Translations under genes and position numbers: made by a program
Part shown: positions 5,800-35,700 of the stretch, in pieces
How positions within the stretch are numbered: the stretch's first letter is position 1
How the letters are laid out: every line of letters begins with the position of its first letter
Notes under the pieces: generated by a model
The model's database searches: none
Told to the model about the DNA's origin: nothing
What the model saw: the letters and a program-made list of their open reading frames with translations, nothing else
DNA from: Dimorphilus gyrociliatus
Lineage: Eukaryota; Animalia; Annelida
Reading direction: 5' to 3'
DNA: 37,628 bases
NCBI GenBank assembly: GCA_904063045.1
Contig: CAJFCJ010000190.1
Location: forward strand, 1 to 37,628

Positions 5800-6110
5800 T
5801 AATTTTGTATAATTTAGGAAAAGGAAGCATAAAGGGAAATGATCTTTTATTTGATAAGAATTTGTCATATTCAATTTAAACGATTACCAGCACTTCAATA
5901 ACTTGAACATGCATTCCTTTGAAATAAAGTCTTTATTTGAGTACATTAAGATTCAATGGATAAATTGATTTTGTTTACCAGAGGTGTGGTCTGTGTATGG
6001 GGAGGCCATCAGCACCAATTAAGGATCTTCAGGGTTGGCATCACAGGCTAAACAAAAACCCTCAATCTAACTTGATCAATCAAGCAGATCTGATATATAA
6101 ATAATCCAAG
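5800..6110 (+). mobile_element. Second, more degraded MULE transposase C-terminal remnant
   Basis: Across stops and frameshifts: EIKSLFEYIKIQWIN*FCLPEVWSVYGEAISTN-KDLQGWHHRLNK, matching the WSVY..RTNNDxEGWHxRLN motif. Confidence 0.7.
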
Positions 6111-6861
6111 GTGAGAAGAAAATATGTAACCAACAAAGATTCCTTTAGAATTTTTCTAACAACTCAATATCAAATATTTTCTTTCCTATATTAAATTTCT
6201 ATAGTGGACATCCTGTAAATGTTAAAGTTGCCACACCAAAATTTTGTAATTTCTATATTCTATTATTCAAATAACCTTTTAAAATTAAATTACAGTTTAA
6301 GCAAAATCCAAGAACTTGATTTCAGCATGAAAAAAGTAAAATATATTTCCAATATGTTCCATATTATGTATAAACATCATTCTATGGATGGAAGATAGTT
6401 TTATATAAATACTTTGATGAGTTATATCATCATTTATCAGTGGAAGAAGCTAATTTATAGCTTAGTCTTATATGTTATTTATGAAGACATTTCTAAGACA
6501 ATTTAAGTGAGAAAAAGATAATTTCTGATAAATAAGGCACAACACACCTGCTTTTAGACTAATTTATTTACTTTTCTCACCTAATATAATTTGTTAAGTG
6601 AAATTAAAGTAGAAAATAGAGTTGTGTATTTTGTAAAATATTCATAGATTGACATCTGTATTGCTCAAATATAAGTATTGCACAACAGAGTGAAAAATAG
6701 TATCTTTTAGTTATTGATAATGAAGTCTGGTCAATATAACACTTATCAGTTAGTTTTTATACAATATAAAAAGTGTTGTCTGCTATAGTTAATCATTTTG
6801 CAGAATTCACTTTGTATAGAGGACATAAAACAACCATAAATGTTTGTTTATATACTAAACA

Positions 6862-7224: not shown

Positions 7225-8195
7225 GCAATTTAGGACTATTAGCTTCTGCTGCTAATTTGCTGCTTTTGACACCTCCATTAACAAAACACTCATCTAAGAG
7301 TCATGCTGATAATCTAATTGCTCTTGGAAAAGGTTTAATTGATTCTGGACATAATGTGAGCATTGTACGACAAGGAACTGTTAGATTGGATGAGCCTGGC
7401 AATATTTCAATGTTGGATGTACATTCACCAGTTTCTGAAGCAACTCTTGAACTTCTTGCAGAAGCTGTAACACAAACTTCAATTGATATGCTATATCAGA
7501 ATATATCTCATATAAATATGGATAAACATTTTACTATTTTTTGGAATGTCTTTACTCAAAAATTTACTGAAAGATATGCAAAAAAGTCTTATTCAATTTC
7601 CAGATATTCAATGGATTTGGTCCTTAAAATGCAATTTAGAAAAAGATTATCCAAACATTCATACTTTTGAATGGATTCCTCAAAAATACCTTTTGTCTAA
7701 ACAAAATTGTATTCTATTCATATCACATGGAGGTTTAAATTCCATTTATGAAACAATGTACTCTGGCACTCCAGTTTTAGTCATCCCAATCCCAACAGAC
7801 AGTATGGACAATTCAATAAGATTAAAAAGACATGGAATGTTGGAAATTCTACATTTTCATACAAAAGATGTCTCATTTCTTGAAGAATATATTGAAATGA
7901 TGGTGAAAGATAACTCATATATGAAAATGGCAAAAAGAGTTTCAGCTCTTTTGAATTCTCAAAACCTAAACCATTAGAAAAGGCTGTTTATTGGATTGAG
8001 CATGTATTAAAGTTTGGTGGCAATCATTTAAGGCACTCTGCAATGGATATGTCTATGTATAAACTATACAATTTGGATTTATTAGCAATTGCAATCATTC
8101 TAAGCTTCTTAATTATTTGGTTAATGAAAAAGCTATTTGTTTTTTCTTTTGTAAAATGTTCTTCAATTTTCTTGAAACATTCTAAAAAAGAATAA
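7225..8195 (+). pseudogene. UGT: UDP-glucuronosyl/UDP-glucosyltransferase with a large internal deletion and frameshifts
   Basis: N-terminus ANLLLLTPP...SH...LGKGLIDSGHNVSI. Signature FEWIPQKYLL...FISHGGLNSIYETMYSGTPVLVIP. C-terminus KAVYWIEHVLKFGGNHLR, a TM helix and HSKKE*. Only about 320 codons versus about 520 typical. The join near 7550 changes frame, there is a second frameshift near 7970, and no ATG exon was found. Confidence 0.85.
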
Positions 8196-9641: not shown

Positions 9642-11555
9642 TTAATACTTTGCCTTCCATTTAGTATATGGAACTAAATGGAACTCTAATTTCCTGTCAC
9701 AATAGAAGAATCCAACTCTTTCAATTTGAATGAATTCACCAATAGAAACATTATGGATATCATTTTCTAATAGCCAAAGTTGTTCACTTTTTGAATTTAT
9801 ATTAAATTTCTCTTTTAAATCGCTAGTATTTTTATTATCATTTTGTAAATTTTCATATTCATATAATTGGACAGTAACCAGACTATTTGGTGTAACCCAA
9901 CTAATTTCTCTTTCAGATGATTTTCTATTTGAAAAATTTTTTGTAAATGAAATTTCTGTTACAATATCATTTTCAATATTTTTCTCTATAACAAAAACAT
10001 TGCCAAGAGACGATAAAGTGATTTCTTCATTGGATGCTAGATGAAAAGCGTCTTCCTGTGATATGAAGATTTCTGATGAATATACAATTTGTTTAGATCC
10101 AAGAGAAGGATTTTTCTTGTTTCTCAAAACTTGAATTTCCAATTCAACTGCATTTTCATTATCTTCAAGAGACGACGACAGTAATTTACACTTGACATGA
10201 TTTTTTAAAGGAATGCCTAAAATTCTAGGGCTCTTTGGATCAATATACTCTTTATTAAGAGTCCAAAGTTTATCCCATGAAATAGTTGTCATCATTTGAG
10301 AAATTCCCAATGATAAAATATATTCTCTTAAAACCTCCATACATAGTCCTCTTCTCTTAAATCCTCTTAGTGTTCCTAATCTTGGATCATCCCATCCATT
10401 GACAAAACCATTTTCAATATAGAATTTCATTATCCTCTTTGAAACGAGTGTTCTCTCAAAATGGCTTCGTCCATAGGTTTGAATCTCTGGCTTATTCTCT
10501 AACTCCAAATTGTTGATAAACCAATAATATTGTTCATTTCTATCACTATATTCATTTGTCCTCAAAACCAAAGTTATTCCATTCAGCGAATCGATAATCG
10601 GAGAAGCAAAATCAAAAGTTGGATAAATAGAGTGTTTATTTCCAGTTTTTGTTTCGGAAGAAGAATCAATACATTTGAAAATGATTGGATCTCTTAAACA
10701 TGCATTTAAGTGATCAAATGATATTTTGGCCCTAAGACAAAATCTATTTTCAATTCCCTTGAACATTCTTTTAAAAATTTTTATATTCATTTTACAGTCA
10801 GTGTCTCTATTTTTGTTGGATTGCTTGATCCTTCTCTGCCTACAAATATCCTCAAGATTTGTGTCATCAACATAGGCTTTACCATCATTAATCAGCTTTT
10901 TTGCAAATTGATATATTCTATGAAAGTGATCAGAAATCCTAACAAAAGTGTATTTTTGGATTCCCAAAAGCTTTAAATCTTCCAGAATTGCCTCTTCAAT
11001 ATCATCGCCTCCCTTATCATTTGGATTAGTATCATTAAAACAGATCCACATTTGACCATTCCTCGATAAATAATCATTGAAAATCGCTCCTCTAGCATGT
11101 CCAATATGCAAATATCCATTTGGTTCGATTGCAAATCGTGTTACCACTTTCCCAACATTTCCTGTATTGATTTCACCATGACTAATGTTGTTAAATGAGT
11201 TTAAGTATTCTTTATTAATTTCAAGATTTTTCCTATAAAAATCAGCAAGTTGGCGAAATGGAAATTCATCTTCGTTGGAGTCATTAGGAAAAGAGATTGA
11301 ACAGTAAAGAATTCCAAAAATTAAATCTGCAACTTTTTGATCATTTTCTACTAAAGATTCAATAATTTCTTCTAATTTTTCATAAAATTCTCTTAATTCT
11401 ATAGTTGATGATTCACAATTGAATTCTAATAGAAAATTTGGAGCATTTAATTCTTTGATATTTGTCTCAAGAATTTCATATTCTTTCTCCTTAATCTTGT
11501 ATTTTTCCTTTAATAAATAATTTATAAATTTGTCTTTACAATCATTTGTCGTCAT
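9642..11555 (-). CDS. GUS1: Stand-alone eukaryotic-type glutamate--tRNA ligase (GluRS), intronless, microsporidian-like, with divergent catalytic motifs
   Basis: 637-aa uninterrupted ORF: VVTRFAIEPNGYLHIGHAR (HIGH), FNDTNP, CLRAKI, LRDPII, YPTFDFASPIIDSLNGIT, LRTNEYSDRNEQYYWF, LVSKR, GWDDPRLGT, and a C-terminal anticodon-binding region (IQIERVGFFYCD). No WHEP repeats or ProRS fusion. Confidence 0.93.
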   Translation of the reverse strand: MTTNDCKDKFINYLLKEKYKIKEKEYEILETNIKELNAPNFLLEFNCESSTIELREFYEKLEEIIESLVENDQKVADLIFGILYCSISFPNDSNEDEFPFRQLADFYRKNLEINKEYLNSFNNISHGEINTGNVGKVVTRFAIEPNGYLHIGHARGAIFNDYLSRNGQMWICFNDTNPNDKGGDDIEEAILEDLKLLGIQKYTFVRISDHFHRIYQFAKKLINDGKAYVDDTNLEDICRQRRIKQSNKNRDTDCKMNIKIFKRMFKGIENRFCLRAKISFDHLNACLRDPIIFKCIDSSSETKTGNKHSIYPTFDFASPIIDSLNGITLVLRTNEYSDRNEQYYWFINNLELENKPEIQTYGRSHFERTLVSKRIMKFYIENGFVNGWDDPRLGTLRGFKRRGLCMEVLREYILSLGISQMMTTISWDKLWTLNKEYIDPKSPRILGIPLKNHVKCKLLSSSLEDNENAVELEIQVLRNKKNPSLGSKQIVYSSEIFISQEDAFHLASNEEITLSSLGNVFVIEKNIENDIVTEISFTKNFSNRKSSEREISWVTPNSLVTVQLYEYENLQNDNKNTSDLKEKFNINSKSEQLWLLENDIHNVSIGEFIQIERVGFFYCDRKLEFHLVPYTKWKAKY

Positions 11556-11737: not shown

Positions 11738-11749
11738 AGTCACGTGACT
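11738..11749. promoter_or_regulatory. Perfect 12-bp palindrome AGTCACGTGACT (E-box / CLEAR-type bHLH-ZIP site) about 185 bp upstream of the GluRS ATG
   Basis: Seen directly. GTCACGTGAC is the known USF/TFEB/MITF-type site. Function is inferred only. Confidence 0.4.
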
Positions 11750-18242: not shown

Positions 18243-19552
18243 TCTCTCACTCTAGAATTCTATTTCTCCATAGATAACTTTGCGCCTAAAGGCTTTTTTA
18301 AATGCAGTCACGAAACGTATTAGATACACGAGAGTAAAGTTTGCGATGGAATTGTCAACTGTCTGCATAAAAGTGATGAACTACTTTGTGAAGATATTGA
18401 AAAGCCTCCTAAGAGATATTGTCAAGAATATTTACCTTTTTCTATAGAATGTTTTTTTGACAATTTTCAATCATTTATCAAAATCAATAAATTCTATAGA
18501 AGCATTAAAATTGATGGTAAAATCCATTTTTATAATCTACAACAAACTTATTGGAATCTATTGAATTTTACCATTTTCAATGCATTTATCTATTATGATA
18601 ATGAAGATAGATTTACTTCTAAATCATTTCCAAATGTTGTTTATATCACATTTAAAAAGATACATAAATTTAACACTTCCATGACCTTTATATCACCTTT
18701 AAAATTACTAATTTACCTTGATTTTTCTAATAATCCAATCAGGAATTTAGATTTCTTGAAAATATTGAAAGCAAACCATCTAAATTATTTTGATATATCT
18801 TTTACTAAAGTAGAAAAAATTCTGGAAAAAGATTTCAAATATTTGAAATTTTTGAAAATTTTCAAAATAACTAATTGTAATATTAAAGCTATTGAGAAGT
18901 TATCACTTCAAAAGTTAAATAATCTTTCAATGTTTGATGCTAGTCATACAAACTTCCCAATTTTTTCACTTCAATTAATTGTTGAAGAAATGATCAATGT
19001 GAAGAGTGTTTTTACAAAATATCATTCATTGTGTTGCCATTCAATTCACTGTAAATCGGATGTAAATTTTTATAAAGTTTGTTCAAAATTAATTGGTTTG
19101 GATGTGACTCGTGCCATTATTTGGATATTCTCAATACTTGGTATATTTCTAAATATTACTTTTTTCATATTTGGCCTCATTTCCAAACATCTCAAATCGA
19201 GATATTTAAAATGTCTGCAAGCAGTCAGCAACCTTTTAGTCACACTGAACATGTTTGTTATTGCCATATATGATATCCACTTTGGCGGTTCATACATGTT
19301 GAAGAGTGAAATTTGGAAACACAGCAACATGTGCATGGTACTTGGAGTAAGCATGACGTTTGCGCTACTACTATCATCGTTCAGTATGTTCTTAATTACA
19401 CTGGAGAGATTTCAAGTGTTGAATCAACCTCTTCAAATACCTATACTGTCAACCTATCCATTTGTATGGTTAATGTTAACAGTAGCTGTTTGCTCATTAT
19501 TGAGAGCAACATTTTCAATTTTCTATCATGTCAGTTACTTAAATTGGAAAGC

Positions 19553-19700
19553 AGATGTGACAGAAAACGTTGATGAGTTCAAAGTTTAACCTAAACCATA
19601 ATCCAGCCTTAGCCCTTACTTTTCAACTTGTACTTTCCCAAATTCTTAGTTAACAATACCAAACAAAATTTCCAAACAGTCCACATTTTCTGTCAACCTC
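19553..19700. mobile_element. Diverged intronic copy of the MITE family
   Basis: AGATGTGACAGAAAACGTTGA ... reverse complement GAGGTTGACAGAAAATGTGGA, with a degenerate CCCTAA-like interior. It lies in the intron between the GTCAGT donor (about 19530) and the CTGCAG acceptor (about 19752). No TSD. Confidence 0.6.
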
Positions 19701-20304
19701 TGCCCAAGAGACACTACTCTATACAAATGTATTCATGTATGTTTTACTGCAGAGTACATTTAGTCATTCTTCAATTTGTTTTAATCTCCTGGTTATAAGC
19801 AACATTGAAAAAGGAAGATTATTTATCTCTATCCTATTTATAATACTATTACCAAGCTTAAGTTTTATAACATTGTTCCTTTACTTAAGAATGTTTTGTA
19901 TTGTTAGAAATTCTTATAAAAAGACAAATTTCAATAAACACCCTTCTCTTGCTTCTTACAATGAAAAGAGTACAGGTGTCAAGAAGAATATTCAAAAAGG
20001 TATAATTCTATTAGCCCTTAATAACACTTTCATTTGGTTGCTGGTATCAATTTTGGGTAGGCCTAAATATAGAGTTTAGAAAAGTTGTGTCTAGTATCTA
20101 TTTTTTCACTATCTAGGAATGTTATTGATATTAAAGCAACTCAGTTTAAAAGAAGATATCTATATTTTATTTATGACTGTATTTTTCTCATTACATTCTG
20201 TTGCAAACAATCTCATTTTCTATTCAAATGAAATATTCCAATATTTTAAATTGTTAAAAAGACTTTCAACTGCAGAAAGGCAATTTTCATTCATTTTCAT
20301 TTCT

Positions 20305-20876
20305 NNNNNNNNNNNNNNNNNNNNNNNNNNNNNNNNNNNNNNNNNNNNNNNNNNNNNNNNNNNNNNNNNNNNNNNNNNNNNNNNNNNNNNNNNNNNNNNN
20401 NNNNNNNNNNNNNNNNNNNNNNNNNNNNNNNNNNNNNNNNNNNNNNNNNNNNNNNNNNNNNNNNNNNNNNNNNNNNNNNNNNNNNNNNNNNNNNNNNNNN
20501 NNNNNNNNNNNNNNNNNNNNNNNNNNNNNNNNNNNNNNNNNNNNNNNNNNNNNNNNNNNNNNNNNNNNNNNNNNNNNNNNNNNNNNNNNNNNNNNNNNNN
20601 NNNNNNNNNNNNNNNNNNNNNNNNNNNNNNNNNNNNNNNNNNNNNNNNNNNNNNNNNNNNNNNNNNNNNNNNNNNNNNNNNNNNNNNNNNNNNNNNNNNN
20701 NNNNNNNNNNNNNNNNNNNNNNNNNNNNNNNNNNNNNNNNNNNNNNNNNNNNNNNNNNNNNNNNNNNNNNNNNNNNNNNNNNNNNNNNNNNNNNNNNNNN
20801 NNNNNNNNNNNNNNNNNNNNNNNNNNNNNNNNNNNNNNNNNNNNNNNNNNNNNNNNNNNNNNNNNNNNNNNNNNNN
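20305..20876. other. Assembly gap (572 N)
   Basis: Run of N. Confidence 0.99.
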
Positions 20877-21019
20877 GATTAATGGCTGATGTAAATTTAA
20901 AATCCACGGCATATATTCAACCAATATTCTTCCTCTATATGAATAATAATGTCAAATCTGAAAATATAAAATACAGCAATAAAATAAATAATTTTTTTCA
21001 GGATATTTTATTTTTACAT

Positions 21020-21039
21020 TGACGTCACGTGGCCAGCTG
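21020..21039. promoter_or_regulatory. Overlapping CRE (TGACGTCA) and E-box (CACGTG) plus CAGCTG, about 240 bp upstream of the deaminase ATG
   Basis: TGACGTCACGTGGCCAGCTG seen directly in a very AT-rich context. Function is inferred. Confidence 0.4.
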
Positions 21040-21268
21040 TAAAAAATTTTATACAGATTGTCAATATCTTATTTCTTTTTATATCGTAAAATTTTCTGAT
21101 AAGATCCACAATCTTGAAGAATACACTCTCTAGTTACTGTATTGTACTTTACGCTTGTTCATTTATGCATATAAAATAGACTTGGTCGATGATTGATATC
21201 TTTCAATACTATCTAATATTTTGAAGGCCAAAAGTCTTACATACAAACTATTTCTGCTGAATAAAGAT

Positions 21269-21718
21269 ATGGAAACTACAGACGTTTCTTTTGCGAAAGA
21301 GGCAATTAAAGAGGCCTGTAAAAGTCAATCAGAAGGTGGAATTCCAATTGGGTCAGTTGTTGTAATAGATAACAAAATTGTTAGTAGAGGTCATAATCAA
21401 AGAATTCAGAAGAATAGTTCAATTCTTCACGGTGAAATGGATGCAATTGAAAATTGTGGTAGGCTTAATCATTCGGATTATTCCAAAGCAACAATTTATA
21501 CAACGCTATCTCCATGTTCAATGTGCACCGGAGCAATTTTACTATATAAAATTCCAAAGGTTGTTTTATGTGAAAATGAAAATTTTATGGGTGATGAACA
21601 ACTTTTAAAAAGTAAAGGTGTTCAAGTTGTTAATTTGAACTTACAAGAATCCATTCAAATGATGAAAGAATTCATTCGCAATAAACCAGATTTATGGAAT
21701 CAAGATATTGGAGTATAG
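21269..21718 (+). CDS. FCY1: Cytosine deaminase, FCY1/bacterial zinc-dependent type (149 aa, intronless)
   Basis: EGGIPIGSV, RGHNQR, HGEMD (HxE), YTTLSPCSMCTGAILLY (PCxxC), ENENF, and C-terminal LWNQDIGV corresponding to yeast Fcy1 WFEDIGE. ATG at 21269. Confidence 0.92.
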   Translation: METTDVSFAKEAIKEACKSQSEGGIPIGSVVVIDNKIVSRGHNQRIQKNSSILHGEMDAIENCGRLNHSDYSKATIYTTLSPCSMCTGAILLYKIPKVVLCENENFMGDEQLLKSKGVQVVNLNLQESIQMMKEFIRNKPDLWNQDIGV

Positions 21719-21722
21719 ATTT

Positions 21723-21732
21723 GTCACGTGAC
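21723..21732. promoter_or_regulatory. Palindrome GTCACGTGAC immediately after the deaminase stop codon
   Basis: Seen directly; same motif as at 11739-11748. Confidence 0.3.
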
Positions 21733-21767
21733 TTGTGTTTTGTACTATATATATGGATATTCTAGAG

Positions 21768-21974
21768 GGGGTCGACAGAAAACGTCCACAAATGAGAAAT
21801 TTCAAGACAAAAATTTGGATTGAGAAATGGTTGGGAAGAAGAAGAGAGCAACTGATTTGTAATTAGGAGGGTCTCCTCTAAGGGTTAGGGGTAATGGAAA
21901 AGGTTAGGTACAGCTAAGGGCTGGGTTAGGGTTAGGGTAAAAGCACCAATTTGTGGACGTTTTCTGTCGCATTC
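21768..21974 (+). mobile_element. 207-bp MITE with TIRs, perfect 9-bp TSD and telomere-like G-rich interior (copy A)
   Basis: Perfect 21-bp IR CGACAGAAAACGTCCACAAAT. TSD ATTCTAGAG at 21759-21767 and 21975-21983. GGGCTGGGTTAGGGTTAGGG at 21918-21937. Confidence 0.95.
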
Positions 21975-22285
21975 ATTCTAGAGGACTGCAATAGCGATAA
22001 CAGACCTATTTCATTGGCCTTTGATTAATGCAACAATTGTTGAAATTTTATAATGAAGATGTTAAAAATTTAAAAATGTAAAAATATCAACAAAAAGATA
22101 AAGCATTAAATTATTCAAAAAACTTGTAATCTTGTAATTCCTACTTGTATACATTAATAACCATCGTAAATAATGGAAAACATATTGAACGATGTCATTC
22201 CTAATTAATTGAATTAATATAAAAAATGAACAAATTTTTTTTGTAGTTTGTGTTTTTAGTTTAAACGAAAAAGAACTGTTCAAGT

Positions 22286-23806
22286 ATGATAGGCAATCTC
22301 TTTTTTATCTTATCTCTACTAAGATTCTTACACTACTCTTCTTCAAGACCGAATAGTAAGAAGAAATAAATGCTATTCAGTTTCTTTGTCATAATTTAAA
22401 TTTTTTAATTTAGTTTGTTTCACTGAAGAGATTGATAATTTTAAAGTGGTGGATAATCATTTACAAACAATATTGTCAATATCTGTTGAAGAATGTAAAT
22501 TTCAATGTATTGATAATGCAAATTGCAAGTGAGAAATATAAAATATTTTATTCAGTTTACTACAAGTTTATCTTTTTGTAGGTCTATTAATTACAATAAA
22601 AGTTCATCAGATTGTTACCTAAACTCGGAAGATAGATATTCATCGAGTGGAAATTTTATCGAAGATACTCAAGTTAACTATCTAGGACCGAAATTTGGAG
22701 CTTGCGGTAAAGAATACGAAAAATCAATAGAAATGTATATTTCACTATTAACATTTTCATTTAACAATTCAGATACTGTGATCAATCCAAAGGAATGTGT
22801 AAATCTGTCTAAAACAATGTGTGGTACAACTGATACTGATAACGCTCATTGTAGAGCTTACGGATGCTGTTTTTCAAATGGAAAATGCTATTACGATGAT
22901 ACATATTTACCTGGATTTTTAAAAGTTCGAAGACATTTTAAACATTTCAATACATTAGCGATATTTAGCGCAATTTCCTTAAAAGATTGCGCAAGAAATT
23001 GTCTTCAAAGGTACAGTTGTAACTGTTTCAATTATAACGAGATTACAACTGTTTGTCGATTGACGTCTGAAGCCTGTAAACAAATTAATACAGTGTCTTT
23101 TTCCCGCAATTACACATATCATAGATTGGCATTTAAGTCTCTAACTTGCTACGATGCAGGCTGTTCGCAGCAAACTTCCACCACCGCTCCAGTAGGCGGA
23201 TTACGAGATTGCAGAACCAAATGCAACAACAACGTCAATTGCGAAATGACAATGTTTGTTCCTGATCAAAGATCTAATCAGTGTTATATAGTGACATCTT
23301 CAACATCATTGTGCAATTTTAAAGAAGCAGCGAGTGGAAAATTTATCGTTAAGCATTCATGTTTGATTGGACCAATTTTCGACGATGAAAAACGTACTAA
23401 AAGTCAAAAAATACAAAGAATTACGGACGATGATGATGATAACACTTGTATTACTTTGGAAACGGGTAAAATTTTTAATCTAAGAATTCCTTGGCCCTCT
23501 GTCGATGGAGAATTGACGAACTTTCTTATTCGAATTAAAGGTGACAATTTACAAGAATGTATTAATGTTTCAAAAGGCCTTTCAGCATCTGGAATACTAG
23601 CTTACATTCCGATTGATATTCAACCGAATCCAGTTTTCCTTGGAACGCATCTAGCCTGTAAATTGGTTGATGGAGACAATCATATATCGTGTACATACTA
23701 CTGCATTTGCGAAAGTTATTACTGCGAAGCTGTATATATCAAAGCTTTTGCCGAAACCGAAGATAATATGAAGATATGCCATTATAATCTAACAAATACA
23801 CTGTAA
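22286..23806 (+). CDS. Secreted PAN/apple - trefoil (P-type) - PAN - PAN protein with a Cys-rich C-terminal domain
   Basis: Exon 1 MIGNLFFILSLLRFLHYSSS (ATG 22286, donor GTAAG). PAN 1 spans two exons (SVEECKFQCIDNANC/RSINYNKSSSDCYLNSE). Six-Cys trefoil CVNLSKTMCG...CRAYGCCFSNGKCYY. PAN SLKDCARNCLQRYSCNCFNYNEITTVCRLT. PAN-like GLRDCRTKCNNNVNCEM...CYI. No disruption seen. Confidence 0.82.
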
Positions 23807-24199
23807 GTATCAAGTGACAATGTAACAATCAACTTCAACAATAATAAATATTGTTATAGTAATAAAATATTTGGGTCAGCAGTAAATCTAGGCCAATTGA
23901 AATAATTAAAAAATCACGTCTTATGCGATTATAGTAAAATATTAGAAAAAATTAAATTAAACTTTAAAAAAAGTAAGAATATTTTTGTGGTAATGAAAAC
24001 CATAAAATCGATATATGATTTCTTCATTTTTTGAAACAATGATGGGAAATTCAGTACATAACTTTATTAAAATATTATATGCTTTAAGTTTCTTTCTTCT
24101 TTCCCTGTCAGACTCTTTATTACTATATTGCTATCGTTTATCCAATTTTCAAATGGTTCTTTTTATTGTTATTTTACATCCAATTTTATCAATTGAATA

Positions 24200-25760
24200 C
24201 TGAGGAAAGAACGTCAAATATTACGTTTTCTTTACAACGTACACTTCTAATAAAGATGCACAGAATGAAGGAAATTAAAAGCCCGATTTGGAGGGAATAC
24301 AACAGATTTTTATTATTATATGAGAGTAATATTCCAACTATCTGGCTTACCAAGTTCTGTCTTATGGCTGGTTTCAATTTATAATTTCTCACAATTATAT
24401 TGTTTGTCCCTTTCTACATTCTAGTAGAAATTTAAGATATTTAGACATTTCCTATACAAATTTAACAATTGTAAAAGGAATTATTTTGAAAATTTAAAGT
24501 TTAAACACTTTAAATATTTCAAAATGTAAATTTGAAGAGCAATCATTTAAATATTTAAATAATCTTGATTATCTTTACATCAACGAATCGTATGTTCCAT
24601 TATTACAATTAAGGAATAGTCTATTAGGTTTAGTAAAGATTAGGAGAATTTTTGGGGATAAAAATTCCAGTTTTGCTGTCTAGTATGGAAAAATATTGGA
24701 AAACATGTCAACTGTTCGCCATCTTTACAAACATTGTTCAGTTGCGATAGATTATTAAGTTCACATTTGATAAGACTTATCCTTTGGTTTTTGGGGTGTT
24801 GGTGTATTTGAAAATCTTTTATCATTTATTTTCAATATAAAATTTGCTAAAGAGCTTAAATATTATCAATTACTTTTGAGATTTGGTGATTTTTGTATAT
24901 CTTTCTATATTCTTATCATTGGTATTGTGGATATGCACTTTCCAAATTCCTATCTGGAAAATGACGATACCTGGAGAAATGGCTCACTTTGCCAAAGTTT
25001 AGGTACATTTATGACATTTTCATTGGTGCTATCTACTTTTAGTACACTACTCATCACATTGGAGAAACACCAGGCTGTTGTTTGTCCATTTGACAAATCA
25101 ACTTTTCAAAAATACGTCCCTTTCCTTATTTCTTCATCAATAATCTTTTGCTTGGCTATATCGATAATCCCATTAGCCTATAATCCGGTTAGTAAACAAG
25201 CTAGGATGATTAGCGAATTAACTCAACACTTTAACTTTTAGATAATTTACAATCATACTCCAATCTGTTTTTATGTTCATATGAGGAAAGGAAGAGCAAG
25301 TGATTGGATAGTATCATTCATACTCTTCAGTATAATTACACCATGTATAAGTTTAATAATTGGTTTTTTATATAAATATTACTAGAACTGTTAGAGTATC
25401 TTTTAGAAGATTAAATAGTAGCCAAAAGAGCGATAAAGGGAAAGAATTAAAAATTAGTATTTTACTTGCTACCGTTTCAAATGTTATTGTTGAATAGTTT
25501 TTTCAATTTTAGGTAAAATAAAAATAAAAAATATTTTTGCAATTTTTTCTTTTATGTTTTTTCTTTCTATAAAAAATGAAGGAGTATCTTCTTTTTTCTA
25601 TGATATTGAAATGAGTAATCAAAACATGACTTTAATCATTTCGCTTCTGTTGCCGTTAAATTCAATTTTAAATCCATTTCTGTTTGGGATTAATGAATAT
25701 TTCAGTTATAAAAGGAGATTCAGAGAGGATAGGTTATACCTTTATCATATAGACAAGTGA
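24200..25760 (+). pseudogene. GRL101-like LRR-GPCR fragment (LRRs + 7TM), multiply frameshifted
   Basis: NLRYLDISYT LRR; FCCL...NCSP...SCDRLLSS hinge; LILWFLG; WRNGSLCQSLG; LITLEKH; HTPICFY; LLPLNSILNPFLF. Several frameshifts and stops; no LDLa region upstream. Confidence 0.8.
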
Positions 25761-26153
25761 AACCATCCAATGTATTCTTCTCTAGAAATGAAATGATAAA
25801 AACTGTTAAAAGTATAACAGCTGCAGTAAGGATGACTCATGCTCATAATTTTTCATTCAATGGCCAATTTTCAATAAATTCCTTTTTATGGAAGTAAATA
25901 TTTGATGAATACTTGTTTAGATAAATACATAAAATCTTCTCTTTTTTGTTTTTTTTACGAGCTTTCAACACATAAATACATTTTTAACATTGGAAACATT
26001 TACGATAAGACAGAACGCAATGAACAAAATAGATATATTTTCACTAGGTACATTTTTAAAGAAGCTTCTAGAAAGAAAATAACAGGCAAAAATTACTGCA
26101 GTTATAGAAAGTATAAAAAATTAAGCCTACTTCCAATAAATAAATTAAAATTA

Positions 26154-27749
26154 TTAAGCGAGAACTTGCAAATTTGCATAATTCTTTAAAATATTTTTAA
26201 TATTTTGAATTTGACTGAAAGTTAGTAAACAAAATCTAAAATCAACAAATTTTAAGTTATATCCACAATGAAAAAGACAATTAAAAAATGGTAAAAATTG
26301 ATATTTTATTAGTCTATTCTTTTGAAAATTAACTGTTTCAAGTTTTAAGCAAACTTTGAGCATATTTCTAATAGTTTGAAAATTATTTATAGTCAATTTA
26401 CATTTACTGAAATCAATGTGTTTTATTGTTTTTGATGATTGAGCAAGTCAATCACAAATGTCTATTAATCCATTCTTCATATTTCTATTACCGCTTAAAT
26501 TTAATGTATGAATATTAGGACAATTGTTTATTAGACATCCAATGCTTGAACAGTGATTTTTATTCACATTACAATTCACAAAGCAGATAATTTGAATTGT
26601 ACTCAATGACTGAACTAGTCCATTGCAAATTCTTAAAATTCCATTATTCATATGTGTTGAATAGCTTAATTTTATTTTTTCAATTTTACAACAATTTTTC
26701 AAAAAATTTTCAATGTAGACGCGTTGAATTTCGTTCAATTTTCTTGAACCGAATTGAAAGTTTTTTAATGTGTGCAACGACTGATCCAAACCTTTACAAA
26801 TTTCTGTTAGTTTATCACTCAGCCTACTGTTTCTAATTAGAGAAATTTTCTCAAGTTTTGCATGATTGTCATCCAAATTACAATGAGCGAGAATAAGTCT
26901 TTCTGAACTACTCGATGATTGGACGACGCCTTTGCAAATGTCTATTATACCATTTCCCATATTTTCATTTCTACTTAGATTTAATATTTGAAGCTTTGAA
27001 CAACTACTCAACAATGTTCCCAAATTTTTACACTGATTTTCCAATAGATTACATTTGCGTAAAAAGATTTTTTTTAAACATTCCGATGATTTAATCAATT
27101 TGATAAAGATATTTGATAATCTATCTCCAATCCTATCATTTCCGGTCAAAGAGATTATATCAATTTTTGTACAATTTTCAAACCAATTTTCGATACTACT
27201 ACATTGATTGTCGTCTAAATCACACTAACTTAGATTAATAGATTTCAAACTATTGGAAAATTGGATGAGGCTTAGCGAAGATATTTGATAATCCACTCAC
27301 CATTTTATCATTTCCCATTAATTGAATTATTTCTATTCGTTTACATTTAATTAATATATTTCCAATATATCTACACTGACTTTCGGTTAAATAACAATAA
27401 GGGAAACTAAGAGATTTTAACGTAGTCCATCACAAATATACATTAAGCTTTACTGGTATTCTTTTCCTCACATAGACTGAATTTTTCAATTTTATGACAA
27501 TTTTTCAACATATTTCCAATATTTAAACTTTGTTTATCATTGAGAGTGCAATTTTTAAATTCTATAACTTTCAAATTGACTTTAAGTGACAATTTTATAA
27601 ATGAAATACAAATTTTTGACAATCCATCGTCTATTTCTATATTTTTATCATCTCTTAAATTTAATATTTTATCTTCATATTTCAATATTTCATAACGTAT
27701 ATTCTTATTTAAGAACAAAGGAACCCACTGGAGTGTTAATTGAAGCCAT
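26154..27749 (-). pseudogene. Ribonuclease-inhibitor-like LRR gene, disrupted paralog of 29440-30960
   Basis: Same repeat (CSKLQILNLSRNENMGNGIIDICKGVVQSS). ATG 27749 is frameshifted near 27720, frameshifts and stops occur at 27150-27440, and TGA at 26448-26450 is in frame with the 26154-26396 ORF. Confidence 0.8.
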
Positions 27750-28464
27750 GAGTTTTTTTGTTACTGTTTACTTTTACCACTAACCTTTGGTAAACACGTT
27801 GCTGGGTGGTTATTGCGGCAAAATAACCACCAGTCTATAATTATACACAGTATAAAGACCCTAACTTTAATCTCAGTCGTCGCCTAAATATTAGTTTACA
27901 ACTAATTTATCTTCGTTTTCGTACATTTCACGACAAAAAATGGTATCCAATTCTATTATTTTTGTGCATTTTTGTATTAAAAGCATTGTGACTCGGAAAG
28001 GATACCCCTAGTCTAATTCTCTTGTCAACTTCCTCACGGTTCAAATCAAGTATATCTTAAAACTTCTTATTAAAAACGTACGTTATCATATTAATCAATA
28101 ATTATAACTTCTCGTAGCTATTGATATTTGAGTACTGAATAGCTACGTCAAGAAAATGGACATTTTACCATAGCTATTATTGACAATAAGTTATCAATTT
28201 TCTTTAAAAACTCTTATCCAAGACATTAAAAGTTTGTCCAATGCTTTTTCTAATACAGGTAAACAATTCTATATAGACAAATGACTATTAATATTCTTGT
28301 CGTAGACATTAATTGTATTTTTGAAGACATTCTTTGTGCTTAAACCCATCTTTACATTATTTATATTGTATAGAGGATAAATAGATACAGGACAATCATT
28401 AATAAACAGTATCAATGACTTACAGAGGAGGGTAAGGAATAGACTCACTCTCTATACAAACTCT

Positions 28465-29015
28465 TTATACAAACTTCAGACATTCAAATTTTCTCTTCTC
28501 TTGACAGTTGATTACTTTATGCTTCAGTTTAGAATCTTGTCTATAGCTGGCAATACAATTTCTATTTTCATTGTTTTCATCGCCTATTTTGGATTTCAAT
28601 GTTTGGGATTCAATGTTAATCAATTTTCTTTCATCCTTTGACCATTCAAAACTATAAAACTCCAAGTTTGAATGTCTTCCTCTAATGTAGCTGTGAGAGC
28701 TTGAAAAGTACTCATTGAACCGCCAAATTTATAGAAAGGTATATAATTATAATAGTAGCATCTGTTAAAAGCATCCTTATGATTTGATAATTGATTAACA
28801 ATTATAAATTTAACACCATTATCTGTATACTCATTTGATACTGTTAAACTTGGAATGCTTACCACTTCCGGTAATGGAGTACTTGGAGTGCTTGTATGAA
28901 AATTTGCATACTCTGGATGTAAATTTGAAATTATTCCGTTAAATATTCGAAATTCAACAGATGAATAAATAGAAATTAGAAGAATAAACAAAAATATATT
29001 CGCTCTCTTCTTCAT
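28465..29015 (-). CDS. Secreted single C-type lectin-domain protein, intronless, with one 1-nt frameshift near 28660
   Basis: Signal peptide MKKRANIFLFILLISIYSS and a T/P-rich linker. CTL N-half FIIVNQLSNHKDAFNRC; C-half FEWS...NCIAS...INCQEKRKFEC. One extra T in a T-run joins the two ORFs. Confidence 0.65.
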
Positions 29016-29439
29016 CTCTCAACTACCAACAACGCTTCTTATTTCTAAGCAATTCTAGTATTTAGGATATAATACTTGTTTGACTGATCGATTTTTCATG
29101 GAAAGAATAAGTATTGACATCTCTATCTTAGTGTTCAGCCAATTGTATAGTATGAATTTTAGTGATCTGGCAGGGAAGGTAATTAATTATTAAATGTCTA
29201 TTATAACAATTTACTAAAGAAATTAATTGTAATTAAAAGTTTTCTGGGAAAACTAGTTAACAATGAAAAAATATGTCTACTTCAAGCTGATTGGCTAAGA
29301 GGGATTCTTATGATGGTTTAGACAGATTAGTCGATTAGGATCTAATGTTTCTTTCAGAATAAAACTACTCAGAATAATCCAAAAGTTAAATAGCTAAGTA
29401 GTGTTTAATAAATTTTTTTCATCTGACAGTGTTTGTACA

Positions 29440-30960
29440 TTATATGTCAATTATACTGGGGTACAGTAGATTTCTTATCTTCTCCTTATCTTTTTCACAA
29501 GATATAGACTTCTTCAAATTCATTTTCTTTACAGTTTTTGATAGTCGAAGACAATTGCAAATCTCTAATAATCCAAGATTTCCAATCATCCAATTCCCTT
29601 CAAGATTAATTGTTTCTAGTTTAGAGCAAATTTGAAATAGATTTCCAAGATGGCGGTATTGTTCTTTTTGTATTTTGCACCAGCTTAAATTGATATGCAT
29701 TAAAGTATTCGAAGAGTGGATAAGTCCGTTACAGATACTTTCAAGTCCATTTCCTATATTTCCATTCCAGTCTAGGTTAATAGTTTCTATTTTCCAGTAA
29801 TTTTTCAACAAATTTCCTAATCCGATGCATTGCGTTTCGTTTAAGTCACATGACCAAAGGTTGATACATCTTAAACTATTCTGCGAATTAAGAAGACCTT
29901 CAAATATATCTAATAACCCATTACCCATGTGATCATTTCCTCCTAATTGGACTGTTTCTATTTTTTTGCAATTTTTCAATAGACTTTCAATTTGTCTACA
30001 ATGATTTGGAGTTAATTGGCAATATCCAAAGTTGATAGATTTTAAACTACTGGACGATTGAACAAGCCCATCACAAATGTAGAATAATCCTTTTCCAGAA
30101 AAAGGATTCTTTCCTAGAACTATAGATTCTATTTTGCAGCAATTTTTCAACAGTTTTCCAAGATGTCTACAACAATTTTCATTAAGATCACAATCATGGA
30201 GATTTATCTCTTTTAAATTGTTTGCCGAATGATGCAATCCTTTACAAATGTACTCGATTCCATTTCCCATATTGATGTTATTTGAGAGGATTATTGCTTG
30301 TATTCCAGAACAGTTTTTCAGTAAATATTCAATCATTTTACATTGATGTTCATTTAAATTACAGAAAATGAGACTAATATTTTTCAAATTGTTCGATGAC
30401 GGAATGAGTGCATTACATATGTTTAATAATCCATTTCCCATTTCCTTATTCCAGCTTAGATTTATTTTCTCTAATTTTGAACAGTTGTTCAATAAAAATG
30501 CAATCATTTTACATTCTTGTTCATTAAAATCACAATATTCAAAATTAATTTCCTTTAAATTATCTTTTGATTGGACTAGTCCATTACAAATGCTATTTAA
30601 CGAATTACCAACATTTGCAATCCATCCAAGTTTTATTGTCTCAATTTTTGAACAGTGTTTGAACAGATTTCCCAGACTTTTACACTCTTCTTCCTCTATA
30701 GTAAAACGTTGGAATTCAACAGTCTTTAGAGAACTTGTTGAAAAATTAAGTCCTTCGCAAACTTTTGTTAATCCTTTCATCATATTTCCAATCATGTTTA
30801 GCTGTATTATTTTAATGCTTGAACACCACTTTAACAAATTAGCAAGTATTTTGAATTCCTCTTCATTAAATTTACAATATTTTATACGAATATCTTTTAA
30901 ACTACTTGATGATTTCATAAGTCCTGTATAGATTTTTGATAATCCATTTTCAACGTTCAT
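29440..30960 (-). CDS. Ribonuclease-inhibitor/NLR-type LRR-only protein (506 aa or more)
   Basis: Intact ORF of about 8.5 tandem 57-aa units (e.g. CSKLEKINLSWNKEMGNGLLNICNALIPSSNNLKNISLIFCNLNEHQCKMIEYLLKN). The frame stays open upstream to about 31048, so the true start may be in a further exon. Confidence 0.85.
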   Translation of the reverse strand: MNVENGLSKIYTGLMKSSSSLKDIRIKYCKFNEEEFKILANLLKWCSSIKIIQLNMIGNMMKGLTKVCEGLNFSTSSLKTVEFQRFTIEEEECKSLGNLFKHCSKIETIKLGWIANVGNSLNSICNGLVQSKDNLKEINFEYCDFNEQECKMIAFLLNNCSKLEKINLSWNKEMGNGLLNICNALIPSSNNLKNISLIFCNLNEHQCKMIEYLLKNCSGIQAIILSNNINMGNGIEYICKGLHHSANNLKEINLHDCDLNENCCRHLGKLLKNCCKIESIVLGKNPFSGKGLFYICDGLVQSSSSLKSINFGYCQLTPNHCRQIESLLKNCKKIETVQLGGNDHMGNGLLDIFEGLLNSQNSLRCINLWSCDLNETQCIGLGNLLKNYWKIETINLDWNGNIGNGLESICNGLIHSSNTLMHINLSWCKIQKEQYRHLGNLFQICSKLETINLEGNWMIGNLGLLEICNCLRLSKTVKKMNLKKSISCEKDKEKIRNLLYPSIIDI

Positions 30961-31779
30961 CCTATCGATTTTTAGCGAGTTTCTGCTGTCTTTCCTCTGT
31001 TTAAGATCGAAATAATTAGTAGATTCTTTGGCTGACTTGTATACATTCTATTTAAATATAAACAGTGTTTTATCTGTAGTTATTACTTTTTGTTTTGTTT
31101 TTTCTTACAACCTGGATACATACATGTCTGCTATTGAATTTAGACAAAGAAAACTGGAACGTTTTTTTTAAATATAATTCCAAATACTTAAGGGTGTCCA
31201 TAACTCTTTCTAAAAGTAGAAGTTTATATTAACGTTTATAAATATCGTGGCTATGCTGAGAAAAAGTTGAGTAGTAACCTAATTGAATCTAGGCCTAGTA
31301 TTGAAACTGAACTTGGTGGCAACTGTTAAAAATCTTTATATAAATCATGATAATAAAATGAATTTGTGTAGAATTTTGGTACAATTTTTAGGGAGTGTAG
31401 GCTTATTTGTTCTTACATTAAGTCTTTCCATTATTTATCAATAATGTTATCTTTTTCGCAAGATGCACATAGAGACAAGAAGTATTTATATTTTTCCCTG
31501 CTCTTCTCCATCACACCTACAAAATGGCTGAGAAATGTATTCTATTGCTAGAGAATCTCTATACAAATGGTAAAAATGATGTCATCATGGCATTTGAATT
31601 TGAATATGGTAGAAAACGGCAAGAGCATTGATTGAAAATGTCCAAAGATCTATTTTTTTAAATAAAATATTACGGTCACCTTGAAAATTCTCGCCGCCAT
31701 GCTGTATTTTTAACGGTACACTGTAGGCCTATATTTTTATCATTAAGAGAAAGTGAATTAATGAAGGTACTGTCCCTAA

Positions 31780-32480
31780 AACTTTCTCAACTTACAAGCT
31801 CTGAATGAAAAGCTATTGAGACTTTAGTTATGGGAAAGTATGGATGACACTATAAAGCAGAGAGTAATTATTCAATTACTTGCATCACAACAAGTTATTG
31901 TAATCAATTTCATTACAAGAGATGAATCATGGGTATTCTATCATGTCATTGATTAAAAGAGCTTCTTTAGAACACCATACAAAACTGTCACCACCACAAA
32001 AAAAGGTTAAGGCAAGTAAATTGGCACACAAACCAATGGCTTGTGTGTTTTGGGATAGGGAAGGGCTTATTCCCCTAGAATTTCTAAATTCACATATCAG
32101 AATAAATTCAGAAATTTACTTTAATATTCTAAAGCAATTAAAACAAAGAATTAATAGAATCAGGCCTAATAAAGAGGTGATTTTTTTGCAAGACAATGCC
32201 AGATCTCATACCAGCCTACAAACTAGCCAATATCTTGCAACAACGGGATGGATAATATTGCCTGATTCAGCCTCTTGCTCCATCAGACTGTTATCTTTTC
32301 TGGAAATTAAAGGACCATCTTTGTGGACAGATATTTGAAAATGATAATGAATTGAAAACAGCAGTAAGGGCATTTTTTTGGTCCAAGTTGCATGAATATT
32401 TTGCCAAAAAAATAAAAACTAGGGACCAGGACATTTTGGCCAATTTTATAAAATTTAGACCTAAGATGTTGTGTCTCACT
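31780..32480 (+). mobile_element. Degraded mariner (Tc1/mariner DD34D) transposase remnant
   Basis: FITRDESWVFY, MACVFWDREGLI, IFLQDNARSH and LAPSDCYLFWKLKDHLCGQIFENDNELKTAV across frameshifts. TIRs not identified. Confidence 0.85.
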
Positions 32481-32780
32481 TGAAGCTATTTCTTGTACAA
32501 AATAATTGATAAATGTGATAATGATGATGTTTCATTTTTTAAAGGATTATGGATTACAACTTTAGGCCTTCTTTTCAAGATGAATTTATAGATTGAATGG
32601 AAGAAAAGTAATGAATTGAAATACTAGAAGATATTTATTAATATTCTGAATCAACTGCAGAAATAGATAAATAAAAGTCTTAAAAGAAAAAAGAAAATGT
32701 TTGCAATAGAATTCTGTGTTTGTCAATTTATTGATTATTTATCTTAAATACTTTTTTCAAACAGTTATAGATAGGCAATC

Positions 32781-35700
32781 ATGCAGTTTTTAGTACTGTT
32801 AAAGTTAATCTTGTACAGTTACTTTCCCCTTATGATTATCAGCTTATGCGGATTTCATGAAGATAATTTGAAAATTCACATGTTTAATAGAAGTGCTGTG
32901 AATTATAAACTGGAACCTATTGAGGAGAATGACAACTATATTTATGGTTATTTAAAAGTTGACGTTTCGAAAAGAAATTTATTTGAATTCATAGCATTCA
33001 AAATATTACCCGAATCGTTCTACAACATGATTTGCACTCTGTTAGGTTTTGATTCTATTCATTTCAGTGCAAATATTTGCCAGAAACCCGGAAGTTTGTA
33101 GTTTATCTCACCTAAAAATATCTTTAGTTTTTTATAGTTTTTTCATTCAAGGTCAAATAACAATTCATATTTCAAAAAATGTTAAAACTTGTTGCGTTTT
33201 GTGAGTATTGTTTAAGGGAAGAGGCATTTTCTACTATTTTCAACACTTTTCTCTTAAAGAGAGATCTTTAACTTATATCTCTTACAGCCATATATATAAT
33301 TTAACATATTACAAGTATCTTCGACTTTTCTGCTTGAAATGCTTCAAATTGCGCAGTTCATGTGTGTACTACATTCATTTGCTTTTGCTATTACAATTCA
33401 TACTTCTCAAAAGATATATTCGCCTACGAATTACAGAACGACGGAACACAGCCAACAGCTTACGAGTTAATTATGAGGGAAAATTCAATAAACTACGAAT
33501 TAACCAATGGCGATTTTCAAATTGACAAACAATTTGTTTGCTCACATTCGCAATACATTTTAAAAGAAAATAGTGTTCCTATTCAAAAGAACGACATCAC
33601 TAAACAAATCAGATTATTCAGAAAATTGAATATTAGCTTTATATTTGTAAAAAATATGTTTGAAAATATCTTTTGCAATGACTACGAAATTCAAGGTAAA
33701 AGAATTAATTATAGTTTGAAATTTGAAAAAAATTTCGATCTCGTTTAAAATGAAATCATCAATTTTTTGTATTTAGATATGGCAATTAAACATTTGCCAG
33801 CAATATACCTTTTTAAGCACAAGGATCACGAATTGTCAAATGATGCAACCAGTCTTATGGTATCTTCAAAGACTTATGGAAATTTTCCCTTCCTCTTCAG
33901 TAGAGGTCAGGAGAGGACAAATCTTATGGAAATGACTTGTAAATACAACAACAATCAACTTGTAGACACTACAAAGCCGAAATTCGACCTAGAAGATTAT
34001 TGGACGAAGGTAAGTGATGCTAAAATTGTTTGTAATCTTCACATTTTAAATATAAGGAGAAATGTCAATGCAGAGAATGACATGCGTTGATACGATTAAT
34101 TATCATTTTCAAAAGAATGGAAAATTTCCGGTATTTGGAGAGTGTAAATGGGATAATTCCTATATGAATGGTTGTAAACTTTTTTATACCAAAAGTAGCA
34201 ATTATCAAATCAGATTGCATTGTTTTAAGAATAAATGTAAGTATAGCCATTTCAGAGATATACTATCAACAATTTTGGTATAATATTTGCCCAATAAAGT
34301 TAAGAATAAGAGAAGTTGATATTGTCTGTAGACATTTCGGTTTTGACAAAGGAAAGCTGGTTTTTAAACAAATGAACAGAAATTTACCAGTAGAGTTTCG
34401 TCACTTTCCCCTCAAATTATCCGTCCATCTTCCGATTCACACCTGGAAGAGTGCAACGGGATATATCACTGCCCTTTCTTCGGGCCAAAGAATTTAACAC
34501 AGTACTCCTGTCACACTCCCAAAATCATTGTTATATATAAAGAGTTTTTTCAGACAAGACAAAAATCTACGATCTGCATTGCTGATGAGACCAACATTCT
34601 TTAAAACCGTTATAAAATGCTATAGGAGTATTAGAAATCGTAAAAATTCTCTTCAATAACAGCAACTTTGAAAAAGAGATAATTCAATTTTTTGAATAGC
34701 TAGAAGAAGTGATAAGAATAATTTTTTCCCAATTGACTATCTACAATATGAATATTTTCAAATAAATCATCCATTAACCATTAATGAAACAATGCAATTT
34801 TGTAGAGAGAGAAATCTCTCACTAGCGGATTATATTCATCCGCATGACTTTAGTAAAATCTTTCACATAGTAAGGCTAAAAGCGTTTGAAAAGTATGGTT
34901 ACGATTTTGAACGAGTCAAAGAAACCCTATCAAGGCTATTTTTACCTATTGGTATTTAAAAATCTTTTATTGAATCATTCCTCATTTTGTTTTTCTTTTC
35001 TTTTCCTTCATGAAGGTTTTCAAGAGACTGTTAATTCTAGAAAAATTCCTACAGTTGTTTCATCAACAAACTATCTGTTTGAAATGATTCCGACTCTCTA
35101 CGCTTTTGATTTAAAGTAATTTTGCTTCTACAGTATTTCTCTTCTCTGGTTCTTTTTGTTGTTCCGTCTATCTATCTCTTTCGATTTCAAAATCAGATCA
35201 TTTGAAAAGATTTATGGTTATAAAGGTGGAAAATACGGTATAAGAAAGCAGCACATATTTCATCCATTTTGGTTATGTTACAAACTAAACTTTCCCGTTG
35301 AACAAGTTCGACATCCGGAAATCTTTATATATAATCTTACTATTACAAGGATTGACTGCTCGCAGAGGATATTCATTTCATTCATATGTACAAATCGAAA
35401 ATTTGAAAAAACTACGGAATGTATTGTATTATAGTTAATAATTGTGGCAAATTCAATATCAGTTTCTTTAATTTTACATTTCAAAAAGTCGTAGGGAATA
35501 GGCATTTAGAGGTCAAGTTCACAGGATGTAAACATAAGCATTTTCTTTGTCCAAATAGCCGTACATGTATTAATCCTGGAAATCTATGTGATGGTGATCG
35601 GGATTGCATTGATGGTGAAGATGAACTAGATTGCGAGCAAAATATTCCATTCAAATGCGACAGCGGAGAAAAAATAGCACTGCAGTTCGTTTGCAACTTT

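Follow-up and report, generated by a model that had tools for sequence, protein, structure and literature searches.

An Fcy1-type cytosine deaminase gene of probable bacterial origin in the genome of the annelid Dimorphilus gyrociliatus

The annelid Dimorphilus gyrociliatus carries an intact, intronless gene for a predicted 149-aa cytosine deaminase of the Fcy1 type, which is embedded in animal DNA and accompanied by further copies elsewhere in the genome. We consider it probable that an ancestor of the annelid acquired a gene of this type horizontally from a bacterium, a direction and a donor that we infer, and that the gene has since been a resident of the nuclear genome, with a host-like base composition and eukaryote-type flanking signals. 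At least two duplications would have given rise to the copies present today, namely copy 1, copy 2 and a now-decayed pseudogene. To our knowledge, animals generally have no cytosine deaminase. This absence is the basis of the selectivity of 5-fluorocytosine (5-FC) and of CD/5-FC suicide-gene therapy, and a resident and selected annelid gene of the Fcy1 type would be an exception to it. The enzyme family itself is well known; it is the host that is unusual. The window analysed here is the whole stretch of DNA, 37,628 nucleotides long, that constitutes contig C190 in an assembly of 77.9 Mb and 349 contigs. The three copies are located as follows.

21269..21718 of the window, forward strand: copy 1, coding sequence including the stop codon, an intact intronless gene for a 149-aa Fcy1-type (CDA-fold) cytosine deaminase
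G000:C210:12753-13202 (L011:4949-5398): copy 2, intact, 149 aa, recognised by 72% protein and 75% DNA identity to copy 1
G000:C155 about 20052-20251 (L012:5052-5251), minus strand: third copy, a decayed pseudogene

Family, fold and predicted chemistry of copy 1

The open reading frame of copy 1 consists of 149 codons and a stop, begins at the first in-frame ATG (21269) and contains no internal stops. A Pfam search assigned the protein to dCMP_cyt_deam_1 (PF00383, E 2e-24) and returned no match to an amidohydrolase domain; judged by this score, the match to the deaminase family is far beyond chance. The best relative of known structure is Fcy1 of Saccharomyces cerevisiae (PDB 1uaq, 1p6o and 1ox7), aligned over residues 12-148 with an E-value of 1.4e-37 and with the C-terminal lid covered, while TadA (best E 1.8e-21), ADAT2 (3.7e-13) and guanine deaminase (9e-11) give weaker matches. 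An AlphaFold2 (AF2) model of copy 1, computed from a 14-sequence alignment, has a pLDDT of 94.6 and superposes on the yeast enzyme with a TM score of 0.94-0.96 and an rmsd of 0.8-1.8 Å at 43-45% identity; TadA and ADAT2 reach a TM of about 0.78, and the order of the fold search is that of the sequence search. Sequence and model thus both support the assignment of copy 1 to the Fcy1-type cytosine deaminases and not to ADAT2/TadA or the cytidine deaminases. ADAT2 and TadA, the vertically inherited animal relatives, belong to the same superfamily and share the HxE/PCxxC zinc site, but they lack the W-x-x-D-I-G lid that copy 1 possesses and score far below Fcy1 (E 1e-13 to 1e-21). A separate ADAT2 orthologue is present in the worm at C6:3804257-3804688, with an E-value of 8.7e-48 to mammalian ADAT2.

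The worm and yeast proteins (149 and 158 aa, respectively) have the CDA fold in common, together with the zinc ligands, the catalytic Glu, the substrate Asn, the Phe loop and the W-x-x-D-I-G lid. The motifs in copy 1 are G41-H42-N43, H54-G55-E56, P82-C83-S-M-C86 and W143-N-Q-D146-I147-G148, and all 11 active-site and lid residues considered are kept (I27, N43, H54, E56, C83, C86, F106, W143, D146, I147 and G148). Their correspondence to yeast Fcy1 is as follows.

Yeast to copy 1, first part: I33 to I27; N51 to N43; H62 to H54; E64 to E56; C91 to C83
Yeast to copy 1, second part: C94 to C86; F114 to F106; W152 to W143; D155 to D146; I156 to I147

Across 200 collected homologues the mapped residues are invariant or nearly so, and N43 is found in 200/200. 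One departure lies directly before the lid Asp, where copy 1 has Gln and yeast as well as 200/200 homologues have Glu. In a simulation of the yeast enzyme, Glu64, Asp155, Asn51 and Gly63 contact the ligand, Asp155 through a hydrogen bond to the base, and Phe114 and Trp152 form the gate (PMC11000218).

These results bear out most of the preliminary description of this DNA, which had read the same stretch as a complete intronless enzyme of the CMP/dCMP-deaminase fold: the HGE, PCxxC, GHN-asparagine and W-x-x-D-I-G features that it listed are each found, and they mark Fcy1 in preference to ADAT2/TadA or cytidine deaminase, as it had held. Its label 'bacterial-type' is apt only in part. The CDA-fold Fcy1 type is widespread in bacteria and archaea, but the label usually designates CodA, which in Escherichia coli catalyses the same reaction with an unrelated TIM-barrel amidohydrolase fold; the distinction between CodA-type and CDA-fold cytosine deaminases has been described (PMC3239186).

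By analogy with yeast Fcy1, a zinc ion held by H54, C83 and C86 would activate a water molecule and E56 would shuttle the proton, while N43 and the C-terminal lid (W143, D146 and I147), together with F106, would close over free cytosine. The predicted products of this hydrolytic deamination are uracil and ammonia, and the uracil could enter UMP synthesis via the worm's own UPRTase-domain genes, which are multi-exon and located on C1 and C21. Indirect support for cytosine as the substrate comes from a close bacterial relative whose gene adjoins that of a cytosine/purine permease. As regards the worm itself, no match to a cytosine permease homologue (PF02133) was obtained in its genome, and co-transfer of the permease, which had been considered, was set aside. 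Cytosine, in its free form not otherwise known to be salvaged by animals, would be available to this small bacterivorous animal from digested microbial nucleic acids, and we infer that copy 1 converts cytosine to uracil for salvage or detoxification. It would also turn 5-fluorocytosine into 5-fluorouracil. For a laboratory model worm this would mean that 5-FC could be toxic and that Fcy1/5-FC counter-selection would then not be neutral.

Host surroundings and flanking signals

Copy 1 lies inside a gap-free block of 16.7 kb (20877-37628) and has the following neighbours.

18561..20304, forward strand: LRR-7TM receptor-like gene, the upstream neighbour, beyond the N gap; member of a host family of at least 118 copies
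20305..20876: scaffold gap of 572 N, 392 bp upstream of copy 1; upstream linkage relies on scaffolding
21768..21975: 208-nt MITE with telomere-like GGGTTA repeats, 50 bp downstream of copy 1
22523..23806, forward strand: PAN-domain gene (PAN_1), 800 bp downstream of copy 1 with no gap between

The assembly contains a marker of an animal genome, two collagen IV genes arranged head to head on contig C3, and the elements next to copy 1 recur throughout it. An inverted copy of the MITE, 100% identical, is situated at 36155-36362 of the window, and genome-wide at least 40 copies were scored (from 619 candidates), including copies on the Mb-scale contigs C5, C13, C16 and C26. The PAN-domain family has at least 66 paralogous matches, among them members on C5, C10, C15, C18 and C20. 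Since both families occur on Mb-scale contigs, copy 1 is physically tied to the host genome. It is integrated in the animal genome, and contamination or chimerism is very unlikely. No bacterial genes neighbour copy 1. The GC content of the window is 29%, and GC3 amounts to 0.19 for copy 1 and 0.28 for copy 2, against 0.22-0.28 for host genes.

The preliminary description had placed the gene in the animal genome, had noted an N gap about 400 bp from it and had called for linkage to be confirmed on both sides. The first point is upheld by the contiguous host MITE and PAN gene, by the LRR-7TM family beyond the gap and by a repeat of about 300 bp on the contig of the paralogue, C210, that is dispersed in the host genome. 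The gap was correctly located, and linkage is established on one side: downstream, the MITE and the PAN gene stand in the same assembled block, but upstream the run of N breaks it.

Several features of these surroundings deserve mention in their own right. MITE copies that are 100% identical are also present on C54 and C13, and this identity points to very recent mobility of the element. The PAN proteins are cysteine-rich and look secreted, many members contain stop codons and appear to be pseudogenes, and a cluster of the family occupies 2.42-2.62 Mb of C5. The LRR-7TM receptor-like genes are single-exon; of the at least 118 members, many belong to small contigs and several are interrupted by stop codons. 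On the minus strand of the window, units of about 171 nt occur in 8 copies at 62-75% identity between 26676 and 30354, within two LRR-type ORFs (26448-27149 and 29440-30960) that look internally repetitive. An ORF fragment at 7546-7977 on the forward strand encodes a UDP-glucuronosyl/glucosyl-transferase domain (PF00201, E 1e-16) and probably represents a single exon from a UGT gene of the host.

The 37.6-kb scaffold carries a second foreign-looking gene, separated from the deaminase by 10 kb and by the N gap. It is an intact, intronless gene at 9642-11555 on the minus strand for a 637-aa class I Glu/Gln-tRNA synthetase (GluRS; tRNA-synt_1c, E 4e-73) with a GC3 of 0.22. All three deaminase copies reside on small, repeat-rich contigs of 17.8-38 kb. 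The presence of the deaminase and the GluRS gene 10 kb apart suggests that foreign genes settle in the small, repeat-rich scaffolds of this compact genome.

Candidate regulatory elements around copy 1 are of eukaryotic type and were located at the following positions.

21020..21032: TGACGTCACGTGG, a perfect CRE palindrome and E-box composite about 245 bp upstream of the ATG, a candidate host-type cis element
21170..21176, forward strand: TATAAAA, a candidate TATA box and putative promoter element 99 bp upstream of the ATG
21723..21732: the palindrome GTCACGTGAC, a host cis-element motif 5 bp after the stop codon of copy 1

Copy 2 has a counterpart of the TATA element, TATATAA at -83, and TATA boxes are common in D. 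gyrociliatus promoters (PMC7854359); in an AT-rich genome, the reading of the copy 1 element as a TATA box is nevertheless weakly founded. Both ATGs are flanked by A at -3 and G at +4. The window contains the sequence GTCACGTG 3 times, where 0.11 occurrences would be expected. The palindrome GTCACGTGAC, an E-box equal to the CLEAR/TFEB-type consensus, has 376 copies genome-wide compared with 12 for the reversed control, and this 31-fold enrichment argues that it is a real host element. It recurs at 11739-11748 of the window, some 185 bp ahead of the GluRS start, and the CRE/E-box composite that precedes the deaminase by 245 bp includes a partial copy. The deaminase and GluRS genes may share a host regulator. 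Copy 1 is not followed by a recognisable AATAAA or ATTAAA, and polyadenylation may proceed via the MITE or a variant signal. A Shine-Dalgarno sequence is absent from copy 1; scans for sigma-70 promoters and terminators are uninformative in DNA of 29% GC. Taken at sequence level, the eukaryote-type signals around copy 1 are suggestive only.

Duplication, selection and divergence

Copies 1 and 2 are each other's closest relatives in 3/3 trees (SH-aLRT 97 and 99 in two of them; UFBoot/SH-aLRT 100/99), and the simplest reading would be one acquisition followed by duplication within the worm lineage. Two substitutions, Cys101 and Ala9, are specific to this lineage; Cys101, a derived residue common to both copies, stands where 200/200 other homologues have Gly or Ala. 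The similarity between the two copies ends at the borders of the coding sequence, with no flanking homology. Their dS of about 1.08 is near saturation and their dN/dS is 0.17, from which it follows that the duplication is old and that purifying selection has acted since; these values indicate what appears to be a long residence in the host under such selection.

Copy 2 has diverged further, and its branch is 2.7 times longer. In its lid, Val takes the place of the Asp that yeast Fcy1 and 200/200 homologues have (D146V), and five more changes fall in columns with at least 95% conservation (R45S, M57T, G64K, M85L and E102D). Copy 2 is probably altered in substrate or function, as these replacements would predict. 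The C155 pseudogene can be recognised only from about residue 80 to 146, split between two frames, and has lost the P-C-x-x-C zinc motif. It ends in LWNEV like copy 2, and the Asp-to-Val change is accordingly older than the duplication that gave rise to the pseudogene. A bolder proposal, which we regard as speculative, is that copy 1 is active and makes the worm the first animal with a working cytosine salvage, sensitive to 5-FC, while copy 2, kept under purifying selection despite the Val in its lid, has been neofunctionalised to a new substrate within the animal lineage. Copy 2 is followed, some 670 bp downstream (L011 about 6065-6239), by a relative of the MITE with 72% identity.

Relatives, donor and competing explanations

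Among 5.8 billion proteins, a word-indexed search retrieved about 8000 relatives, the best of them 66% identical to the worm protein. The nearest relatives, at 62-66% identity, are encoded in bacterial operon-like neighbourhoods in all of the four best examined. The deaminase genes P0001 and P0002 adjoin rpsF-rpsR-rplI, dnaB, alr and zapD; P0003 adjoins tauE, spoU and flhA; and P0004 adjoins the cytosine/purine permease gene, rho, uvrC and ruvAB. Species-representative prokaryote genomes yielded 563 relatives on scanning, and the best 80 of these, at 55-64% identity, come from Chloroflexota, Bacteroidota, Planctomycetota, Acidobacteriota, Omnitrophota, Campylobacterota, Pseudomonadota, methanogens and Asgard archaea. 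In an exhaustive search of 1.84 billion cluster representatives, carried out with no length filter, 91 clusters were obtained at E <= 1e-30 and none of the representatives was closer than 60% identity. Matches in the protein atlas are to prokaryotic clusters only. Public assemblies searched for the exact sequences of copy 1 (149 aa) and copy 2 (149 and 153 aa) gave no match, a result that carries no information on expression. The basidiomycete representatives identified (Cubamyces, Obba and Lactifluus) are 50-56% identical to the worm protein, other named cluster members are Burkholderiales and Fuerstiella MAGs, and there are no animals among the few matches that carry names. Four long representatives (P0152, P0148, P0160 and P0154) were considered as possibly eukaryotic and set aside: they do not fall near the worm pair, and of their contigs one clearly belongs to a bacterium while another is ambiguous.

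In an unrooted tree of 73 sequences, the worm pair and 17 close matches form a clade (UFBoot 99/SH-aLRT 92) in which the pair is sister to the other 17 (91/85), and the fungal clade (100/92) is placed elsewhere. The fungi in this tree are the three basidiomycete cluster representatives; no ascomycete, ciliate or other protist sequences were identified among the representatives. A first tree of 202 rows had placed the worm pair differently, in a position without resolution. Those members of the sister clade that carry names are MAGs of Burkholderiales and one of a 'Deltaproteobacteria bacterium', and the UvrC protein encoded on the P0004 contig is closest to MAGs labelled Deltaproteobacteria (62% identity). 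On this evidence, the donor would best be called an uncultured proteobacterium, the term being taken broadly. The prokaryotic relatives, annotated as 'nucleoside/cytosine deaminases' in MAGs (e.g. P0001-P0005 and P0028), have the length and the residues of the worm's enzymes, and some of their genes are linked to a cytosine/purine permease gene. The worm genes differ from them in their animal genome, host GC3, TATA-type upstream elements, MITE neighbours, Cys101 and Ala9.

The preliminary description had left the donor as a bacterium or a fungus and had proposed a database search and a phylogeny to find it. Both favour prokaryotes, and the bacterium is now the more likely half of that pair, although in an AU test a tree constrained to a worm and basidiomycete clade was not rejected (ΔlnL 20, p 0.237, 149 columns). 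A bacterial origin appears from these comparisons to be the best-supported reading, but not formally the exclusive one. The test leaves room for a eukaryotic donor, such as a fungus, protist or parasite with an Fcy1-type gene that perhaps arrived together with the GluRS gene. Fcy1 is classically fungal, ciliates have been reported to have cytosine deaminase (PMC3341644), and the second foreign-looking intronless gene is on the same scaffold. Such a donor seems rather improbable to us, given that the maximum-likelihood tree sets the worm pair among bacterial sequences, that identity falls from 62-66% for bacteria to 50-56% for basidiomycetes and 43-45% for yeast, that the four nearest matches examined all have bacterial contexts, and that the N gap and host genes separate GluRS from the deaminase. 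The same indecisive AU test, and the possession of Fcy1 by fungi as the sister kingdom, could also be cited for vertical descent from an opisthokont ancestor, with loss in almost all animals and survival here. This we hold to be highly improbable: every tree sets the worm genes beside bacterial rather than fungal sequences, copies 1 and 2 are intronless, and very many independent losses would be needed. Mammals and fish lack the enzyme according to published statements, our literature search brought up no Fcy1-type gene reported from annelids or other animals, and the D. gyrociliatus genome paper mentions neither the deaminase nor a survey of horizontal gene transfer (PMC7854359).

A bacterial contaminant or an assembly chimera is the least probable of these alternatives, despite the small size of the contig (37.6 kb), the gap just upstream and an intronless gene with bacterial nearest relatives. 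The contiguity with the host MITE at 50 bp and with host gene families in the gap-free block argues against it, as do the host-like GC3, the 72%-identical paralogue and the pseudogene on other host contigs, the lack of bacterial neighbour genes and of a Shine-Dalgarno sequence, and the fact that even the closest database protein is only 66% identical. A different kind of doubt concerns function, in that an integrated and conserved protein might act on 5-methylcytosine, isocytosine, creatinine or another small heterocycle, or be non-enzymatic. KEGG-style annotations of its relatives read 'cytosine/creatinine deaminase', and copy 1 has Gln for the fully conserved Glu next to the lid Asp. However, copy 1 retains every known ligand-contact residue of the yeast enzyme, on which its model superposes closely, and the permease gene beside a close bacterial relative points to cytosine, so that we judge another substrate unlikely for copy 1. 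It would be more likely for copy 2, with D146V and its five further changes. The bacterial transfer of a cytosine deaminase gene, followed by residence and duplication, hence remains the explanation that we favour.

The proposed event has a parallel in nematodes, in which GDA-1 and GDA-2 are CDA-fold guanine deaminases of bacterial origin encoded by the duplicated genes gda-1 and gda-2 (PMC13419446). There, as would be the case in the worm, a small bacterial base deaminase of the CDA fold was retained and duplicated in an animal lineage. The nematode enzymes differ in that they act on guanine and belong to the subfamily of Bacillus subtilis GuaD, and in that they have been shown experimentally, whereas the worm case is a prediction. 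If correct, the annelid gene would be a clean addition to the few metabolically meaningful transfers from bacteria to animals: its integration, its duplication and divergence, and a pseudogene can all be seen. Among the bacterial relatives, P0004 (L014:8613-10426, on a contig of Logan SRR33375180) shows an arrangement in which the permease gene (PF02133) is followed directly by the deaminase gene, resembling codBA with an Fcy1-type enzyme in place of CodA.
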